DNA of 64,000 bases, taken from the sequence record NC_070950.1; one strand, 5' to 3'. The notes under the pieces are model-generated. The model searched no databases. It saw nothing but the letters and a program-made list of their open reading frames with translations, and was not told where the DNA came from. The first letter of the stretch is position 1, and each line of letters starts with the position of its first letter. Shown here piece by piece: positions 1-43,712 of the stretch. The position numbers and the translations under genes are program-made.

Positions 1-1
1 G

Positions 2-1066
2 GCTTACTATCAGAAAGCTTGGACTTTGTTATGGGTGCCAGGGAAAGAGAGTATTATAGCTCCTATGCTGATCGTAGAGTGGATGGGTACGGGTTCTGAT
101 ACTAATGCTTATATCGGCGTGATGACGTTAAACGTGGTTAAAAACCCAACGCTGGCTGCTAACCAAACTACGACTGTGAATGGTGTAAAAACCTGCGTAA
201 TGAATGTAGGTGATTTGACAGTAGTCAACAAATATACTGTGACGAACGGAACCTATTCTGGTGATCGTTCTTGGTTTGATGCGATTGGTAACCACTACAT
301 CAACTCAGGATATTTTACTGTTTATCGCAATGCGTCTGGCGAAGTCTCTTTCTATTGGGGTTCTACCAATTCTAAGAACTACGGAAGCGCGACCAGTTAT
401 GGTGTTGCTAAAACGGCGTACCTGTCTGGTAAAATGTCGTCAGCAACCGTCATTTCCGCTATTAACAATTACCCTGGCGGAAGAGATATGTTGGGGTCTG
501 TCGTCTATGCATTAAAAGGCGTCGGTCTATTACTGATTTCCGATACGATGGCTACCGATATCTTTGTGGGTGGCGGCATTACTCCGGCTAAGCTGGCGGG
601 TAGTACCTACCAGTCAGTTCTGGATGGATATGCTAACACAGCGCTGTTAGGATCGTTCTACATCGTTGCCGACATCATCCCGGTCAATCAATGGACGTTG
701 TTCTTCTCAGCGAGTAAGATCGTTTTGAAAGGAACCTATTTCGAACTCCCCGTTGGTACTCTGACATTAACAGATTACTTCACCAATGTTCAAAATAAAA
801 CGTTCTACTTGTTTTTAAAACTCACTGAAGGTAGTCCTGTGTATGAACTGTCATCAACCATGTTGTCGGAAACTTCGACATGTATGTTGATAGCGACGGT
901 TACTACTGACGCCTTAAGCATTGTTTCTGTAGATACACAAAAGGTCTTTTCAATGACCGGCTATCGCGTGTCGTCTCAAGCTATCGGTTCGATCATACCT
1001 GGGTCGACCGGGGGGATCAACGAATTGGGCGAGACACCGTGGCTGTCGTCTACCTTGGTTGATTAA
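2..1066 (+). CDS. Virion tail/baseplate structural protein, 5'-truncated (phiKZ gp131-135-like paralog family)
   Basis: Frame is open from the window edge. C-terminal domain (FYLFLKL...MLIATVTTD..SI......GYRVS....GSIIP) is shared with the next two ORFs. Confidence 0.7.
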   Translation, partial: AYYQKAWTLLWVPGKESIIAPMLIVEWMGTGSDTNAYIGVMTLNVVKNPTLAANQTTTVNGVKTCVMNVGDLTVVNKYTVTNGTYSGDRSWFDAIGNHYINSGYFTVYRNASGEVSFYWGSTNSKNYGSATSYGVAKTAYLSGKMSSATVISAINNYPGGRDMLGSVVYALKGVGLLLISDTMATDIFVGGGITPAKLAGSTYQSVLDGYANTALLGSFYIVADIIPVNQWTLFFSASKIVLKGTYFELPVGTLTLTDYFTNVQNKTFYLFLKLTEGSPVYELSSTMLSETSTCMLIATVTTDALSIVSVDTQKVFSMTGYRVSSQAIGSIIPGSTGGINELGETPWLSSTLVD

Positions 1067-1072
1067 CCCTTT

Positions 1073-1097
1073 AAAAGGAGGGAGTTTCCCTCCTTTT
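1073..1097 (+). terminator. Intrinsic terminator
   Basis: AAAAGGAGGGA-GTT-TCCCTCCTTTT hairpin followed by a T-rich run. Confidence 0.8.
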
Positions 1098-1114
1098 ATT
1101 TTCATAGGTGTAAT

Positions 1115-4100
1115 ATGTCTGACTTTAAAATCCTATCTTTCGATCCCAGAGGGGATAACGCAGATAATCTGTTAACCGAGCAGGTGACGTTGGATGACAC
1201 CACCCTCGATTACATTAAACCGGATTACAGTCCATTTTATTCTAACACTGTGGTTATTACTGATAAAGATGGTCAAGTGAGGAATGAAGGGACAGATTAT
1301 GTTCTGGAAGGTTTAGTCGTCCCACTGGTAAAAACTTCCGGTAAGGATGTAAAGGCTTACATCAGAATCGTCAATACAGAACTCTATGCTAAGTCTCCAC
1401 TGAGCATTCGGTATCATTCTTGCGGGATTAACCACTTTCCGAGAGATATGGTTAAGAACACTCCAACCGGGTCAGAAGGTAACAACCTCCCCGTCGATTG
1501 GAATACGCAAGTTTTAGGCAAGCCCGATTCTTATCCTTTTAAACCGCATATTCATAACGTTGAAACTGAAATAGCGGCGTGGACTGATTTGGCCGATGAA
1601 ATAGAAGAAATTTATCAGTACAGAAAAAATCACATCCTCAGCAAATACCAAGAGTTAAAAGGTCTGAGCGATGCAGTTTGGACTGCGACTGATCTCACCG
1701 CCAAGCAGCTCCGCGATAATGTGATGAATCACGATCGTGATCTCGATAACCCTCATGACGTTGATGCGGCTGACGTTTTACTCGGTAACGTAGACAACTT
1801 TGCTACAGCAACCGCCAATGACGAACTCCTGGGCTCGGCTGATAAGTTCTCTACCCCCCTAGGAGCGCAGTCTATACTTAATAATTCATTACAAAGTACG
1901 GACAGTTATCATCACATTGGTCGTCTTCCCCTTTCTTATTACGGAACTGATTTTTATATCCCCCCTCCGATAGAGGGAGACTTTAAAGGGATGTGGACTA
2001 ACTGTGAAACGGCCGGATTCTGTTTGGAAGATAACGGAACGTTAATGATGCTCGCCAATGCGTCTGACGGAAAGCACAACGGTCTGTTTTACACCACTAT
2101 TGAAAATTGGGATAGCACCAATCCAAAAGTCAGATATACCGGCTATCCTTACCAATGGGGGAATTTGGATTACCGTAAACTCAACGCCATTGTTGAAGGC
2201 TCTGGTAAAGACGTGATGATCGTAGGGAACCGTGTTTCTCAGGATTGGTACATTACTCTGACCAAAGGGACCTTCGACCCAGCGAAACACAATCTGCACA
2301 AAATCTCTTTCGATACCACCCCTCCTGGGATGTGGGACAATTATGTCGTTAACGAAAGATTCCCTTGGTTCGATATCAGCAAGGTTTTTGTTGCAGGGAA
2401 CTATGTTTGGCTGATGTATCTCAACCATCAGTATTTTAGCAATGAGTTGAGGATGGCTAAGGATCTTTATTTTTATCGCATCCCTTTATCAGCCTTTGAT
2501 ACTGACGGTCCGTTGGTATTCCAGGCGGTAACTCTGACAAGCGCGCATAACGTTTTCGGGACATTATTCTCTAACGTTAAACCGCTTAGAATGACGGATC
2601 CTGTTAAGAAGTCCAACGGGTATTATAACAATAGTTGGTGCAGAACTTCCCTGGATCTAACGTCTTCATTCCAGTGGATAAAATCAGTTATTATCCCGAC
2701 AGATTACGATACAACGTCTAACAAGAAGCTGATCTATTTAGAAACTAGAATGCATGACTATTATTATAATGGTTCTGTTTATAGTTTCTATTCTCCGGCC
2801 CTGCAGTTCATTTATATCTTTGATCCTGACAATAATACGTTTTTACTCCATCCTGATAGCGGAAGAAACTACCTAATTGATTTGGGGAATACCTCCAATA
2901 ATCCCCAGAGAGTAGAGGGAAGAATGGGTAATGGGGATGACTGGGTCAACATAGGTAGGAACCAAAGACCTAGTATCTACGCGATGAATGGCTATATTCT
3001 TAAGTCACAAATAAATCAGACTTACACCACCTTTAAATTAAAAACTGATTTACTCAGTTGGTTCAAAGACCCTTATTCGGGAGCAACGGGTGGGACTAAT
3101 GCTCTGACGGTAGTTAAAAAGTCTTATCCGATGGTAGAGCCCCCTGGCGCGGTTCAATCAAGCTATTTCGATGGCGCTGAAATATATGGAGTTTATGGTC
3201 CCCTTCCATCCAGCTCCACCAACGTCGCGACCAAAATGGGTTTATACCTCAGAACCGGATTGGGGGACTACGCCAATCACCCTGAGATGAGATGGGACAA
3301 CACTAATCTCATGATACGTCTGCCCAGCAACCAGGACTTTAAGATAGCGGGTGGTGGAAACTATGCAAGATGCAGTGTGACCGGTGATGCCGCAGCATTA
3401 ACCGCAGCAGGGACAACGATAGGGTGGACTGGATTCAGCGTTTATGAGGATAGGGGTGTTTTCGATAAATTCACCAACTGGCCCGCTCAGCCAAGTAATC
3501 AGGTTGCTTTACCCGGGAACATCACCTGGGATACAAGTGTTCCTGGAGTAGCGACAGCCCAGGTGAATTCTACAGTAAATTACCCAACCACCATTATCAA
3601 CCAGATTAAAGCGGTGTTGACTAATGGTATCGGGGCGACGAAATATTCGTCGTTTACACTTTACGATTTCACCTATTCCCCGTTTGCGGACGTCTATTCG
3701 GTAGCCACCCTTTTCTATACGAAGCCGGGATCTGCTGGACTGTGGACAAGGTTTATTTTGTTTAAACCTACGGTAACAACGTCCGGTACCGTAAAAACTG
3801 TGACCGCTTATTCCGTTCTGTACAACTCCGGTGAAGTGGTTAACGATGGTCCGAGGTTCTTCGCGAACATTGACATGAGCTATTCTAGAGGATTCGACAC
3901 TTATCCCATAGTGGAAGTCTATGTCAATCGAACCACCGGGATCCATTATTACAACATTTATCCGGGCGTTTGTTTCTATCCGGCAGGAAGTACTGGGGCG
4001 TACGCGGTTTCTTATATCGTACAGTCTCGTATACAGCTACAGCGGGCGACATCCAATAACGCGATTACTGTTACCGAAAACACAACAAGACCTACTTGGT

Positions 4101-4627
4101 ATAACGACGAATATTACGTTACCATGATTCCTAAGGTAGGGAGGGTCACTGTTTACGGCATTGATGTGCTAACTGAGATGGCGAATACTGGATCGATCGC
4201 AACAGTAAATGGAACGCGATATGTGACCGCTCACACTTATCCGGCGGATAACTGGTATGTGTATTTTACCAATGCGATTAACGTAACGATAGAAGGCGGC
4301 AGTTATCTCATGCCGACGGGCAGTATATCACTTTACGACATTGTAAGTAATCCCGTTGATAAGACGTTCTACGTTTATATCAGGTTGAACGGAACCAAAG
4401 CGGAATATTTCGTTACTACCAAAAAGCTTTACGTTTCTAGCAAAATGTTGTTTGTTGCAACGATAACGACTAACGATAAAGGGATCAGCAGCATCGATCT
4501 TCTCCAACCGATGATGGTGGGGGATTTGGTTCTCTCTAACGTACGTCGTGGTCAAGCAATTCCTGTTGTGGACGGGTCGCTGGGTCAAGAAGCAACTGTG
4601 GTATGGAAACGCAGCCAAGATAATTAA
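1115..4627 (+). CDS. Large virion tail/baseplate fibre-type protein (phiKZ-like)
   Basis: 1170 aa, Thr/Gly/Asn/Tyr-rich. H..D.DNPHDV.A.DVLLGNVDN fibre motif and the shared family C-terminal domain. Confidence 0.7.
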   Translation: MSDFKILSFDPRGDNADNLLTEQVTLDDTTLDYIKPDYSPFYSNTVVITDKDGQVRNEGTDYVLEGLVVPLVKTSGKDVKAYIRIVNTELYAKSPLSIRYHSCGINHFPRDMVKNTPTGSEGNNLPVDWNTQVLGKPDSYPFKPHIHNVETEIAAWTDLADEIEEIYQYRKNHILSKYQELKGLSDAVWTATDLTAKQLRDNVMNHDRDLDNPHDVDAADVLLGNVDNFATATANDELLGSADKFSTPLGAQSILNNSLQSTDSYHHIGRLPLSYYGTDFYIPPPIEGDFKGMWTNCETAGFCLEDNGTLMMLANASDGKHNGLFYTTIENWDSTNPKVRYTGYPYQWGNLDYRKLNAIVEGSGKDVMIVGNRVSQDWYITLTKGTFDPAKHNLHKISFDTTPPGMWDNYVVNERFPWFDISKVFVAGNYVWLMYLNHQYFSNELRMAKDLYFYRIPLSAFDTDGPLVFQAVTLTSAHNVFGTLFSNVKPLRMTDPVKKSNGYYNNSWCRTSLDLTSSFQWIKSVIIPTDYDTTSNKKLIYLETRMHDYYYNGSVYSFYSPALQFIYIFDPDNNTFLLHPDSGRNYLIDLGNTSNNPQRVEGRMGNGDDWVNIGRNQRPSIYAMNGYILKSQINQTYTTFKLKTDLLSWFKDPYSGATGGTNALTVVKKSYPMVEPPGAVQSSYFDGAEIYGVYGPLPSSSTNVATKMGLYLRTGLGDYANHPEMRWDNTNLMIRLPSNQDFKIAGGGNYARCSVTGDAAALTAAGTTIGWTGFSVYEDRGVFDKFTNWPAQPSNQVALPGNITWDTSVPGVATAQVNSTVNYPTTIINQIKAVLTNGIGATKYSSFTLYDFTYSPFADVYSVATLFYTKPGSAGLWTRFILFKPTVTTSGTVKTVTAYSVLYNSGEVVNDGPRFFANIDMSYSRGFDTYPIVEVYVNRTTGIHYYNIYPGVCFYPAGSTGAYAVSYIVQSRIQLQRATSNNAITVTENTTRPTWYNDEYYVTMIPKVGRVTVYGIDVLTEMANTGSIATVNGTRYVTAHTYPADNWYVYFTNAINVTIEGGSYLMPTGSISLYDIVSNPVDKTFYVYIRLNGTKAEYFVTTKKLYVSSKMLFVATITTNDKGISSIDLLQPMMVGDLVLSNVRRGQAIPVVDGSLGQEATVVWKRSQDN

Positions 4628-19239: not shown

Positions 19240-20580
19240 ATGGTTTCAATTGATGATGTGCAGAAAAAACTCACTGCTTATTTTGACGACCGTTTAATCG
19301 GACAACCTGAATTAGTAGAGGGTATTGTAACCAATATCAAACTACGAGAAATCTACCATAACAATTTAGCCTTTGCTAAAGAAACTGGGATTTATATCCC
19401 CCCTTTAAATATGCTGGTTAGGGGGAAATCTGGCAACGGTAAAAGTCATTCGATTAACTTTATTTGTCGATCTTTGGGATTACCTTTCGTCAGCGTCAAC
19501 GCCACGGATTTTACTTCTTCCGGTTACGTTGGCGCTTCGTTGTCAGATATTCCTAAAATGCTGATCGATGAAGCGGAAAGGATTCTTAAAGAGAAAGATC
19601 AAATTAAGGGTGGGTTCGACGTTCCCCCTCCTACACAGGACGATAAAGATATTGAGGAAGCCGACAATCGTTTTAAAGCGATAGAAAAAGAATTAATCGA
19701 CTTGGGCGTTCGTATGGATAAAATGGGCCCTAAGCGACCTGCCTTCGCCCACTCTATACGTTTGTATGAAAAGGGGATACCGTACAGAATCAGACTTTGT
19801 TTCCGTAACAAAACACCTAAGAAACTTTATGCCGAATTAACCGAAGGGAAGGAATTTACGGATAAAGAGAGGACTAAGATTAATAGTCTTTTAAACAAGC
19901 TATCCACCCCATATAAACCCTACTCGTTTAAATTCGATACAAGTTTCATTGATAAGTTCAGGTTAGGTGGAATAAAAGATTCTAATCCTGGAGTCAAAGA
20001 GTATGCCCAAAATAAGGGCATCGTTATGATCGATGAGATCGATAAAATCCTTATGGGTAAGAACGGACAATACAACGTTGGCACTCACGGAATCATTAGG
20101 GAGATTTTAGCGTATCTGTCCGGATCGAACATTATGTGCGGAGGGGATATGTTTGATACGTCAAACATCATCTTTATCTGTGCTGGCGCTTTTGACATGG
20201 TTGACTTTAAAGACATCCCCACCGAACTCTTAGGTCGGCTCCCTACACGTTTAACTGTTAAGGACCCTACTGAAGATAGTCTTTACCGGATGCTGACTTC
20301 CCAGGTAGTCGACCCGTGGGGTATGGTCAAACTCATTCTTCGTAATAAAGGATGTGAGAATTTTATCATTAGTGATGAAATCTCTAGGCATATCGCCAAA
20401 CGTGTTATTGAGGACGAAAAGATCAAACCCATTGGGGTCAGACGTTTAATGGCCGTGATTAGCGAAATAGCTAAAATCTATTATCTCATGGACGAGATAG
20501 ATAAAGAGATAACTTTATCAGAGTTCGTAGCGGATAAAGCACTTAAAACGATTAGAGACGGTTTATTAGAATCGGTTTAA
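19240..20580 (+). CDS. hslU: HslU (ClpY)-like AAA+ ATPase
   Basis: Walker A GKSGNGKS, VNATDFTSSGYVG pore loop, long I-domain, Walker B MIDEIDKI, FICAGAF, PTELLGRLP, GVRRL. Confidence 0.9.
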   Translation: MVSIDDVQKKLTAYFDDRLIGQPELVEGIVTNIKLREIYHNNLAFAKETGIYIPPLNMLVRGKSGNGKSHSINFICRSLGLPFVSVNATDFTSSGYVGASLSDIPKMLIDEAERILKEKDQIKGGFDVPPPTQDDKDIEEADNRFKAIEKELIDLGVRMDKMGPKRPAFAHSIRLYEKGIPYRIRLCFRNKTPKKLYAELTEGKEFTDKERTKINSLLNKLSTPYKPYSFKFDTSFIDKFRLGGIKDSNPGVKEYAQNKGIVMIDEIDKILMGKNGQYNVGTHGIIREILAYLSGSNIMCGGDMFDTSNIIFICAGAFDMVDFKDIPTELLGRLPTRLTVKDPTEDSLYRMLTSQVVDPWGMVKLILRNKGCENFIISDEISRHIAKRVIEDEKIKPIGVRRLMAVISEIAKIYYLMDEIDKEITLSEFVADKALKTIRDGLLESV

Positions 20581-22706: not shown

Positions 22707-22811
22707 ATGGCTAAATCCAAAATGTCCGACTTTATTGATATTGCCGTGCTGTTCCTGGTAATATCTCTCGTCTTAACCTTTTTCTTTTACGCTATTATTA
22801 AATATGGATAA
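22707..22811 (+). CDS. Small membrane protein (34 aa, not in the ORF track)
   Basis: MAKSKMSDFIDIAVLFLVISLVLTFFFYAIIKYG; stop overlaps the next start. Confidence 0.55.
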   Translation: MAKSKMSDFIDIAVLFLVISLVLTFFFYAIIKYG

Positions 22812-23154
22812 AACTACTATGTTTGACCTTATTAAGCTTCTCGAGATCTTCCTGGGATTCTTTATTTGTATTCTGCTGATCGTTCTGCTCATCATAACGG
22901 TACGGAAAAACAAATACCCTCAACTACCGCCCACCCATGAAACGATACGTTACATCATCTCTGGGGCTCTCCAGACGAAGAAATACGACACGCCTGATCT
23001 TTATACCTATCTCGGTATAAAACTCTCTAAAGAGTATGGAGAGTTCTTAAACATAAAGATAGAGTACGATCTATTATCCCCTCCCGGGCAAGTAACCTTT
23101 TACATAAAGGATTATAGGCTTAAACGAGTTTACCCGCTAACCTTTAACGCATAA
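22804..23154 (+). CDS. Hypothetical membrane protein
   Basis: N-terminal TM segment, 116 aa. Confidence 0.7.
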   Translation: MDKTTMFDLIKLLEIFLGFFICILLIVLLIITVRKNKYPQLPPTHETIRYIISGALQTKKYDTPDLYTYLGIKLSKEYGEFLNIKIEYDLLSPPGQVTFYIKDYRLKRVYPLTFNA

Positions 23155-23164
23155 AACATAGTCC

Positions 23165-23196
23165 TACTCCTACTCCCGTAATAGGGAGTAGGAGTA
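23165..23196. terminator. Terminator of the repeated CTCCTACTCCC hairpin family
   Basis: TACTCCTACTCCC-GTAATA-GGGAGTAGGAGTA. Confidence 0.75.
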
Positions 23197-23249
23197 CTCT
23201 TATGAATTTATTTTTAATTAATTAATGTTAAACCTAGGATAGTATAGTA

Positions 23250-23450
23250 TAAATAGCTCTAGCGTAATATATTAGGCCTTCGGCCTAAAGGGCTAGGGTA
23301 AGTCAATTCGTTCGTTTCAGCATCAATCAAGGTATTCGCTACGCTCATACTTTCTTATGCTTACACTCACCCATGCAACCTGGAGAGAAACCCCGACTGA
23401 ACAAAGTTGTTTATTCCTTCTCAGGGGAATAAACAGTTCGTCGGCTAAAG
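23250..23450 (+). ncRNA. Candidate structured non-coding RNA or leader
   Basis: No credible ORF. Nested helices 23257-63/23292-98, 23272-77/23283-88, 23393-402/23436-44, 23408-17/23426-35. Strand is assumed. Confidence 0.4.
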
Positions 23451-23530
23451 ACATAGGATGTTTTATGATCAGTAAAGAAATACGATAATCTAAACTTATT
23501 AGTTCAAACACTGTAATCTAGGAGATAACC

Positions 23531-23647
23531 ATGAATATCGTAATGCCATTAAAGTTACTCGGAGGGTTACTTATCCTGGGGGTGAGTTTTGGATTACTGG
23601 TTTATCTCATTGTTAAACTCTCCGTTAAAATGGCGTATAAAAAATGA
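23531..23647 (+). CDS. Small membrane protein (38 aa, not in the ORF track)
   Basis: AGGAG RBS; MNIVMPLKLLGGLLILGVSFGLLVYLIVKLSVKMAYKK; ATGA overlap with the next gene. Confidence 0.65.
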   Translation: MNIVMPLKLLGGLLILGVSFGLLVYLIVKLSVKMAYKK

Positions 23648-24111
23648 GTGAAGAAGAGCTGTCATTAGGTTATATTTCGGTTAAAGTCATTCCCACTCAG
23701 GAAGGGATTCTTAAAGATAAGGTGTTGGATGCAGGCTGTCTTCCGTTAGATGAAGGGTCGTACCACGCTACGCTTATTTTTGATATTCATCAGGATGGTG
23801 TCATTCCCAACGTACCTATGATTCCTGAAAAGATCTTCGAGGGAAAGGTTATTGGAATCAAGGAACTCGGAGAGCGTAAAGGAGATATTATCTCAGCCGT
23901 TGTACTCGAACTGGATTCTCCTGAACTGATAGAAGAACACGATCGGTTAATACAATGTGGGTATGGTCATTCCTATCCGGATTACATCCCCCATATTTCG
24001 CTCGCTTACAAGGTCACAGAAGAGCAAATGGAAGATCTCAAACGACAGTGTGAGTCGCTTATTGGTAAAACGTTCTACTTATCCGGAGAAAGCATCGACT
24101 GGATAGATTAA
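23644..24111 (+). CDS. acb1: 2H phosphoesterase, Acb1 / T4 gp57B-like (putative anti-CBASS nuclease)
   Basis: HxT motif YHATL and HxS motif YIPHISLAY. VVLELDSPELIEEH...GYGHSYPDY parallels T4 57B LVLDSEYLRCRH...GATHDFDDYTPHITL. Similar size. Confidence 0.8.
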   Translation: MSEEELSLGYISVKVIPTQEGILKDKVLDAGCLPLDEGSYHATLIFDIHQDGVIPNVPMIPEKIFEGKVIGIKELGERKGDIISAVVLELDSPELIEEHDRLIQCGYGHSYPDYIPHISLAYKVTEEQMEDLKRQCESLIGKTFYLSGESIDWID

Positions 24112-24124
24112 GAGGTAAAGGGGT

Positions 24125-24553
24125 ATGTCTGATAAACTTACTGTATCACTTTTTAAGCTTATAAAAAACCACACTGGGTTAACGTTAAAGGAAGGCGAAT
24201 TCTCTTTAACGGGAGAAAGACCCTTTTGGTTCAGAATACCTCCTTTTCCCCTTAACCCCAGTTCAAGAGAGAGATTGAGAGATCTCTTTCAAGATAACTT
24301 TGATGTGACTGTAGTTGATTATGTTGACGATTACCAGATCATATTCAGCCAAATTGAACCAACAACTTCTCGTCGTATAAAACGCGTCAGGAACATCCTA
24401 GATGTGTTAGAAAGAGAGTACGGTAGAAACTGTCTCAGACCAGAAACCGGTAGAATCTTGAGCGGATATTACTCTACTCATAAAGACAGAATAGAACAGG
24501 AAGAACTTGCTTATAATAAAAAGATTTTAAATGAAGCGTTACGAAGACGCTAA
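24125..24553 (+). CDS. Hypothetical protein
   Basis: 142 aa, GAGG RBS. Confidence 0.75.
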   Translation: MSDKLTVSLFKLIKNHTGLTLKEGEFSLTGERPFWFRIPPFPLNPSSRERLRDLFQDNFDVTVVDYVDDYQIIFSQIEPTTSRRIKRVRNILDVLEREYGRNCLRPETGRILSGYYSTHKDRIEQEELAYNKKILNEALRRR

Positions 24554-24594
24554 TCTTATGCGATATTTTTAATCTTAAAACGTGGGGTGGGTAA

Positions 24595-24918
24595 ATGACG
24601 TACGATGAAGTCGAGAAATATCTGGAAATGGGAGAGGCTATCTCTAAGGGTAGTTGGAAAGCTAACGAAGCGGTTTATTTAGAGCCGACAACGTTACTTA
24701 ATCCAGCTCACTATCCTGAGTGTTTAAAAGCCGCAGGTATTAACTCCCTTTTGAGAGTCGATCGGCATTTAGTGCGTGTTACCGCGAGTAACACTGTTGA
24801 GCGTTTTATTCCCAACATTGTAGAAAGAAAAGAAAACGATTGGTACGTTAAGAGTTACACCTTCGAACAAAATAAAGCATTGCCAGAACACAATCAAACC
24901 CAAGAAGAAGCTGCATAA
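24595..24918 (+). CDS. Divergent DUF2829/Tad2-like protein
   Basis: MTYDE...L..G..I...SW N-terminus and TASNTVERFIP....ENDW end follow the Tad2 spacing, but WNG and SQxD are missing. Confidence 0.5.
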   Translation: MTYDEVEKYLEMGEAISKGSWKANEAVYLEPTTLLNPAHYPECLKAAGINSLLRVDRHLVRVTASNTVERFIPNIVERKENDWYVKSYTFEQNKALPEHNQTQEEAA

Positions 24919-24923
24919 TAACA

Positions 24924-24935
24924 CCCCCCCCCCCC
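24924..24935. repeat. Poly-C homopolymer (12 C)
   Basis: ACA-CCCCCCCCCCCC-TACAC, intergenic. Confidence 0.8.
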
Positions 24936-24949
24936 TACACTTAGATTTT

Positions 24950-24979
24950 AACCAGGAGAGGCGTAAGCCTCTCCTGGTT
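24950..24979 (+). terminator. Intrinsic terminator
   Basis: AACCAGGAGAGGC-GTAA-GCCTCTCCTGGTT followed by T-rich sequence. Confidence 0.85.
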
Positions 24980-43436: not shown

Positions 43437-43712
43437 ATGAAATTTACTTCTGCTGTTGCAAAACTCAAACCCGGTTACGGGATTCAGTGCACCGATTGGA
43501 ATGGTGCTAATCAATTTGTTTTTGATGCCTCTTTGACCATGTCTCTCGTTGAAGCACGCAAGCAGGGCTTCCCCGGCCCGGTTAAACTGAAACCGGTTTA
43601 CGTGTTGCATAACGCTAAAGGTGAGCTGCAACCTGGTTGGGTGCCTTCTCAGGGTGATCTGCGCAACGAGAACTGGGTCGTTGTCAAAATCAAAGACGCG
43701 CTGGCGAAATGA
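43437..43712 (+). CDS. tad2: DUF2829 / Tad2-family protein (putative immune-signal sponge)
   Basis: MKF..A...LKPG.....WNG..F.F ... GWVPSQGDL.NENW matches the Tad2 pattern F..A...LK.G...WNG...WVPSQ.D...EDW. Confidence 0.8.
   Translation: MKFTSAVAKLKPGYGIQCTDWNGANQFVFDASLTMSLVEARKQGFPGPVKLKPVYVLHNAKGELQPGWVPSQGDLRNENWVVVKIKDALAK

Follow-up and report, generated by a model that had tools for sequence, protein, structure and literature searches.

An Acb1-family phosphodiesterase gene in the jumbo Klebsiella phage Miami: a diverged family member and candidate counter-defence enzyme

We describe here a short gene of Klebsiella phage Miami, a 253-kb jumbo phage of the genus Miamivirus, whose product belongs to the Acb1 family of two-histidine (2H) phosphodiesterases, phage enzymes known for destroying the cyclic-nucleotide alarms of bacteria. 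The gene, called acb1 below, lies in a stretch of 64,000 nucleotides of sequence record NC_070950.1 (the window, whose numbering is used throughout), which corresponds approximately to bases 62001-126000 of the Miami record MT701590; window positions 22800-24600 are 100% identical to MT701590.1 84800-86600. It is the second gene of a terminator-bounded unit, composed of a 335-nt leader poor in open reading frames (ORFs), a gene for a 38-aa peptide, acb1, and genes 081 and 082. The same locus was found in six further records, KPN8, YC1, BUCTxx100, phiKp_32, VB_ZK_P1 and a RefSeq copy, at 87-94.5% DNA identity. One of them, BUCTxx100 (OR529409), carries the host label Stenotrophomonas, yet it is 94% DNA-identical to Miami across the locus, a surprising label beside those of the Klebsiella and Raoultella phages. 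The acb1 gene and its two catalytic motifs are as follows, residue frequencies here and below being counted over 120 aligned members of the Acb1 family.

23644-24111, + strand: CPT_Miami_080, Acb1-family 2H phosphodiesterase of 155 aa, assigned by PF23474, phrog_755 and the fold of an AlphaFold model (AF2)
23764-23772, + strand: first catalytic motif, H41-A-T43, equivalent to T4 H44/T46; His in 120 of 120 members, Thr in 118 of 120
23992-24000, + strand: second catalytic motif, H117-I-S119, equivalent to T4 H113/T115; His in 119 of 120 members, third position Ser in 87 and Thr in 33

A first-pass annotation of the sequence had pointed to a 155-aa ORF with one HxT and one HxS motif, and both motifs are indeed there, as YHATL (residues 40-44) and PHISL (residues 116-120). 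In GenBank, CPT_Miami_080 is an 'RNA ligase' of 129 aa starting at GTG 23722. The 155-aa form, starting at ATG 23644, is the correct one, because phrog_755 aligns from its residue 8 and the tblastn matches to homologues in other phages begin at its residues 2-9. The GenBank version, which leaves out window positions 23644-23721 (MT701590 85644-85721), loses the first beta-strand (residues 9-15 in the model) and the nearly invariant Tyr10, and cloning it would yield a protein without either. As for the name, 'RNA ligase' is simply that of phrog_755, since T4 Acb1 itself sits in this group. The GenBank record needs both a new name, Acb1-family phosphodiesterase, and a new start at ATG 23644.

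Two short HxT/S motifs taken alone could be a matter of chance, and this is excluded by the Pfam, PHROG and profile-profile statistics. With the Pfam Acb1 model, PF23474, the Miami protein scored 47.7 bits (E 1.7e-12) where 27 are required, over profile positions 33-122 of 144, and a scan of the whole Miami record gave the same result. The phrog_755 match covered residues 8-155 with an E of 6e-24; T4 Acb1 (gp57B, taken from the T4 record) matches this profile at 228 bits. When the profile of the Miami branch was compared to that of the T4-like clade with hhalign, a probability of 99.9% was obtained (E 3.8e-36, 149 columns). A phmmer search of the PDB sequences returned three significant matches (E <= 0.001), all of them Acb1, namely FBB1 7t26 and BCSR5 9q2g and 9q2y, and the next matches started at E 0.79 with a plant cyclic phosphodiesterase (CPDase). 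When 1.84 billion representatives were searched exhaustively, 218 relatives came up at E <= 1e-3; a word-based homologue search gave only two. Sixty-one of the 218 were aligned, and all 61 matched PF23474. The NCBIfam scan gave no family for the acb1 ORF or for its neighbours.

Similarity to the T4 protein had been proposed for the whole C-terminal half. By BLASTP, Miami residues 56-124 align to T4 gp57B residues 53-120 with 37% identity (37 bits overall), so that the proposal is right around the second His motif, in the best-conserved block of about 70 residues, and fails at the C-terminal end, where the last 30 residues diverge.

The AF2 model of the Miami protein is of high confidence (predicted local distance difference test score 91.2, predicted template-modelling (TM) score 0.85), and its beta-alpha-beta-beta / beta-alpha-beta-alpha-beta arrangement is that of 2H enzymes. 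In a structural search against representatives, the best match was the Acb1 of the Burkholderia phage BCSR5 (9q2y_B, Z 15.7, 147 residues, root-mean-square deviation 2.7 Å), followed by the Acb1 of the Erwinia phage FBB1 (7t27_A, Z 15.0), all other 2H enzymes remaining at 12.2 or below. Foldseek ranks 1 to 5 were likewise all Acb1 chains, with E. coli LigT in 39th place or lower. BCSR5 Acb1 (9Q2G/9Q2Y, phmmer E 3e-4) shares only 14-17% identity with the Miami protein, and no paper describing this enzyme was found. T4 Acb1 and FBB1 Acb1 (7T26/7T27) have in common with it PF23474, phrog_755, a 2H fold of about 150 aa and the HxT/S tetrad. ORF 23644-24111 is thereby confirmed as a diverged member of the Acb1 family, an expected addition to a known family.

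The GenBank and PHROG label raises the possibility of a housekeeping enzyme acting on RNA ends, either a 2',3'-cyclic phosphodiesterase or a LigT-like 2'-5' ligase, which would take part in primer or tRNA processing or in RNA repair. The 2H enzymes of this kind, E. coli LigT (5LDM), Arabidopsis CPDase (1FSI) and Deinococcus CPDase (5H7F), have the same fold and two HxT/S motifs, and at Z 10-12 they are the next-best folds after Acb1; a sub-threshold match of the Miami protein to PF13563 (2_5_RNA_ligase2) and the fact that 23 of the 61 aligned homologues also touch this model go in the same direction, as does the constant place of the gene, which follows RNase H at a distance of 1-4 kb in Miami, pTD1, RisingSun, EL and two metagenomic contigs. 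Against this, the label is inherited from phrog_755, to which T4 Acb1 belongs, and the LigT and CPDase enzymes are longer (170-190 aa), with clearly lower fold scores. Their Pfam models fail: PF13563 reached 19.7 bits for a cut-off of 27, and PF02834 (LigT_PEase) gave no match in the Pfam scan. The comparison of Acb1 with LigT models suggested in the first-pass annotation thus favours Acb1, and the clustering with LigT or other 2H clades that it had envisaged is not borne out, since Acb1 leads in the profile, PDB sequence and fold comparisons. Moreover, a scan of the genes lying between about 18.7 and 28.5 kb of the window turned up neither an RNA ligase nor a polynucleotide kinase partner, and the gene is accessory, four model chimalliviruses lacking it (see below). 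We consider a role at RNA ends quite unlikely.

The functional residues of T4 Acb1 have been reported by Hobbs et al. 2022 (PMC9117128): a catalytic tetrad H44/T46/H113/T115, four stacking aromatics (Y12, W74, F107 and W147), E141, which contacts adenine N6, and a lid formed by residues 145-152. These residue numbers agree with the T4 sequence taken from the T4 record. In the alignment the tetrad is kept, as H41/T43 and H117/S119, and Ser at the last position is commoner than Thr across the family (87 versus 33 of 120). Two of the stacking aromatics are also kept, T4 Y12 as Y10 and F107 as Y111. Codon changes were compared between Miami and VB_ZK_P1, BUCTxx100 and phiKp_32, for acb1 and for the peptide gene; acb1 is under strong purifying selection, with 55 synonymous and 6 non-synonymous changes relative to VB_ZK_P1. 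A catalytically dead or binding-only relic, to which the C-terminal divergence alone would point, is therefore highly improbable in the face of four intact catalytic residues, this selection and a confident, compact model. All of the catalytic apparatus is in place, and the substrate cage, as detailed below, resembles that of T4 only in part.

We regard it as probable that Miami Acb1 is a cytoplasmic nuclease of the Acb1 type, cleaving adenine-containing cyclic di- and trinucleotide alarm signals. It would be a metal-independent 2H enzyme in which H41/T43 and H117/S119 are opposed across a U-shaped beta-sheet pocket. His-mediated acid-base catalysis has been shown for T4 and FBB1 Acb1 (PMC9117128), and by analogy with these the Miami enzyme would cut the 3'-5' bond in 3'3'-cyclic GMP-AMP (3'3'-cGAMP), cyclic UMP-AMP (cUA) and the cyclic trinucleotides cAAA and cAAG, with a 2',3'-cyclic phosphate as intermediate. 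The signal would then be destroyed before it activates effectors of CBASS (cyclic oligonucleotide-based antiphage signalling), such as Cap4, Cap5, CapV or NucC.

Such an activity would fit the biology of nucleus-forming phages, where the phage nucleus shields DNA from nucleases and a soluble alarm may still be raised; Acb1 would fill this gap. That Miami belongs in this setting, as the first-pass annotation had assumed, is supported by its chimallin, found with the phrog_4795 profile at E 7e-99 (MT701590 positions 232048-233937). Neither the phiKZ chimallin used as single query nor Pfam PF25677 gave a match in Miami, which we attribute to a problem of sensitivity, since the broader phrog_4795 profile found the gene. 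The profile also detected chimallin in pTD1, RisingSun, EL, OBP, PCH45, Goslar and 201phi2-1. In Prichard et al. 2023, too, Miami is considered distantly related to the chimallivirus RAY. The literature also agrees that nucleus-forming phages are exposed to signalling-based defence, another point of the first-pass annotation: RNA-guided type III CRISPR immunity with NucC restricts PCH45, and CBASS-NucC acts on a phiKZ mutant (including a 2026 review, PMC13282480), phiKZ itself countering CBASS and Thoeris with the sponge Tad1 (PMC13282480). PCH45, reported vulnerable to immunity by cyclic triadenylate (cA3) and NucC, has no acb1 by phrog_755, which we count in favour of the proposed role.

Several observations weigh against this role, some of them in the substrate pocket. 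The base-stacking W74 of T4 is replaced by L75 in Miami. E141 of T4 aligns with D152 in both MAFFT and hhalign, a conservative change deduced from alignment, and the position varies between D, Q and T among the closest relatives. The Miami protein stops at the equivalent of T4 K144, so that nothing in it aligns with the T4 lid (residues 145-152, including W147). Beyond the pocket, a quick maximum-likelihood tree placed the T4-like sequences on one side of a branch supported by the Shimodaira-Hasegawa-like approximate likelihood ratio test (SH-aLRT) at 86, apart from Miami, and similarity to T4 in BLASTP amounts to the 37 bits mentioned above. The RNase H neighbourhood of the gene is of a stable, replication type rather than a variable anti-defence island. 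Finally, we found no biochemical or genetic data in the literature for Miami Acb1 or its branch, and no paper on Acb1 in Miami or testing any chimallivirus homologue.

The replacement of W74 is tempered by the family counts: the column holds L in 68, F in 28, M in 17 and W in 6 of the 120 members, and with Trp in only 6 it is a trait of the T4-like clade, no Pfam-wide requirement. BCSR5 Acb1 has Trp there, in contrast to Miami. Near the C-terminus, MAFFT and hhalign agree in aligning E149, which is conserved, with T4 E138, and W153 with T4 P142. The nearest relatives have W or M at the position after the E141 equivalent, and Miami W153, two residues from the C-terminus, may take over the role of the W147 lid residue. 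A last difference is a helix at residues 126-139, after the second His motif in the Miami model, where T4 has a loop. Because W74 is replaced, this helix added and no counterpart of the T4 lid aligned, the substrate range of the Miami enzyme is one that we infer.

These same differences could mean a counter-defence enzyme of the same chemistry whose range has shifted from that of T4, for example one specialised for cA3, or one accepting signals that T4 Acb1 spares, such as larger rings (cA4 is left uncut by T4 Acb1). cA3 is the activator of NucC made by type III CBASS and by type III CRISPR. The altered pocket (L75, helix 126-139, the shorter C-terminus with no aligned T4 lid) speaks for such a shift, together with the variation of the adenine-contact position within the Miami subclade, the separation of the branch from the tested T4-like clade, and the fact that NucC immunity is the documented signalling defence against chimalliviruses, PCH45 lacking acb1. 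On the other side, the W74 position is occupied by L, F or M in most of the family members sampled (111 of 120), and nothing in the Miami protein points positively to another ligand. In addition, 9 of 9 further homologues tested by Hobbs et al. 2022 cleaved 3'3'-cGAMP and cAAA (PMC9117128). As a similarity of 37 bits is, by our estimate, too weak for a default T4 search of a large database, the Miami branch was probably covered neither by the 273 proteins of that work nor by its nine further tested homologues. All considered, we judge a shifted range rather unlikely, and retain cleavage of the signals known from T4 as the probable function.

Outside the Miami group, the closest phage homologues by tblastn were in phages of 235-285 kb: Vibrio pTD1-like phages, Photobacterium PDCC-1, Erwinia RisingSun and Joad, Pseudomonas EL-like phages, and OBP. 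In the tree, Miami groups with two metagenomic proteins (support 97), within the set to which pTD1, RisingSun and EL also belong, while OBP Acb1 is placed elsewhere, with the non-chimallin phage EJP2. In the latter (OQ411014, positions 1-4189 of the compared stretch), a chimallin-negative Escherichia phage of 349 kb, acb1 lies between a nicotinamide phosphoribosyltransferase gene and a SIR2-family gene, and this locus may be an anti-defence or a nicotinamide adenine dinucleotide metabolism cluster.

Distribution among nucleus-forming phages is patchy: acb1 is present in Miami, pTD1, RisingSun, EL and OBP, and phrog_755 was not found in phiKZ, 201phi2-1, PCH45 and Goslar. Since these four model chimalliviruses lack it, acb1 is an accessory gene of nucleus-forming phages. 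KX397364 (Asesino) had neither a chimallin nor an Acb1-family match. The conserved position near RNase H suggests that acb1 was mostly vertically inherited in the part of the family holding Miami, pTD1, RisingSun and EL. In EL (NC_007623), a DHHA1-domain phosphoesterase gene (PF02272, 32 bits, positions 1500-2738 of the compared stretch) stands between RNase H and acb1. A similar DHH phosphoesterase after RNase H in Miami was considered and rejected, the gene in question (19240-20580) being an AAA ATPase.

A wider proposal would be that the chimallivirus branch of Acb1 is tuned to other signals such as cA3, that its patchy presence decides which nucleus-forming phages withstand signalling-based immunity, and that acb1, 081 and 082 form an anti-signalling operon; we hold this as a whole to be doubtful. 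Acb1 itself is established, and Pfam already tags the Miami protein cluster; the Miami gene is a correction of annotation and a diverged member of the family, no new system. Tools of the AntiDefenseFinder type already call acb1 in some jumbo phages. According to the 2026 review, Tad1 is so far the sole anti-defence protein described in jumbo phages (PMC13282480). An Acb1 active across several chimallivirus genera would be the second, and one easily tested; it would show how nucleus-forming phages handle soluble alarms against which the nuclear shell is no barrier. Klebsiella pneumoniae is the host of Miami-like phages, and knowing their counter-defence genes helps to predict host range when phages are chosen.

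Two other kinds of viral protein can be compared with it in purpose. The penguinpox cGAMP phosphodiesterase (9BKQ, Z 10.6) is likewise a 2H enzyme of a virus and breaks down an immune signal of the cGAS type; it differs in length (about 200 aa), in its 13% identity, in coming from a eukaryotic virus and in its substrate, 2'3'-cGAMP. The Tad1 of phiKZ and the Tad2 of phages also neutralise nucleotide immune signals, by sequestration instead of cleavage and with an unrelated fold, and phiKZ has no Acb1-family gene. Miami carries a canonical Tad2, of the anti-Thoeris sponge family, as well, at 43437-43712, which matched PF11195 at 53 bits and, in PDB, SptTad2 (E 6e-7) and SPO1 Tad2 (E 7.5e-5). 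It follows that Miami has at least two kinds of anti-signalling gene.

The remaining features of the locus are listed below.

23167-23195, + strand: intrinsic terminator at the end of the upstream unit, after gene 078; a G+C-rich inverted repeat then a T-run, annotated in MT701590
23196-23530, + strand: ORF-poor leader or promoter region with hairpins, from inspection of the sequence
23531-23647, + strand: CPT_Miami_079, single-pass membrane peptide of 38 aa; AGGAG Shine-Dalgarno sequence, conserved ORF
24125-24553, + strand: gene 081, 142 aa, function unknown, no informative family match
24595-24918, + strand: gene 082, 107 aa, weak Tad2/DUF2829-like candidate, PF11195 below threshold
24950-24979, + strand: intrinsic terminator closing the four-gene unit; 13-bp stem then a T-run, annotated in MT701590

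Gene 081 gave no Pfam, NCBIfam or PDB match and a single marginal one to phrog_22859 (a group of unknown function, E 0.0067). Its Atlas model is of low confidence and uninformative, and the gene is confined to the seven Miami-like records. Gene 082 is a candidate only for a Tad2-like protein. It reached 23.4 bits with PF11195 (Tad2/DUF2829) for a cut-off of 25 (E 8.5e-5, profile positions 1-72 of 73), its close homologues bear a precomputed PF11195 match, and its Atlas model compared with a Tad2 cluster at a TM score of 0.74. On the negative side, the hhalign alignment with canonical Tad2 had a probability of 14%, a PDB profile search with gene 082 returned no Tad2 and only a chance match to a ribosomal protein, and the PGWVPSQGD motif of canonical Tad2 is missing from it. 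If the candidate is real, the four-gene unit may also include a Tad2-like sponge for nucleotide signals. Canonical Tad2, together with this weak Tad2-like neighbour, shows that Miami invests in anti-signalling genes.

In the leader, a GGCC-TTCG-GGCC hairpin lies around 23276-23287 and a perfect 9-bp stem around 23409-23434. Rfam gave chance-level matches only on 23100-23700, a sigma-70-like promoter scan of the same interval found none, and no repeated promoter motif was found in the window, either with a 19-mer from the AT-rich block or with a 10-mer recurrence scan. In phiKp_32 (LC768500), a 1392-bp tnpB insertion of the IS200/IS605 type (positions 767-2158 of the compared stretch) interrupts the leader at about 23360, and would part acb1 from any promoter upstream of this point. 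Contigs from one transcriptomic library span 23228-24929 in five pieces, with none over 22793-23227 or past 24929, and three metatranscriptomes contain fragments of acb1, 081 and 082. These contigs fit the bounds of the unit and support it weakly, as contigs from metagenomic or mixed samples prove neither transcription, nor ends, nor strand.

A single long hydrophobic segment and a C-terminus rich in Lys mark the 38-aa peptide, whose start is preceded, seven bases upstream, by a strong AGGAG Shine-Dalgarno sequence. Its TGA overlaps the acb1 ATG as ATGA, so that the overlap with a membrane peptide gene noticed in the first-pass annotation is real; it is kept in VB_ZK_P1, BUCTxx100 and phiKp_32, as are the peptide ORF and its frame, with synonymous versus non-synonymous changes of 8 versus 4, 2 versus 3 and 6 versus 1, respectively. 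Given this overlap and the fact that the 15 bases before the acb1 ATG contain no Shine-Dalgarno sequence, we reasonably infer that acb1 is translationally coupled to the peptide ORF, and its translation from ATG 23644 would probably occur by re-initiation after the latter. The peptide is absent upstream of acb1 in relatives with 59% and 41% identity, and is for this reason a trait of Miami-like phages, no general partner of Acb1. In the 59% relative, 13 bases separate the end of RNase H from acb1, leaving no space for a peptide gene, and in the 41% relative another gene occupies this place.

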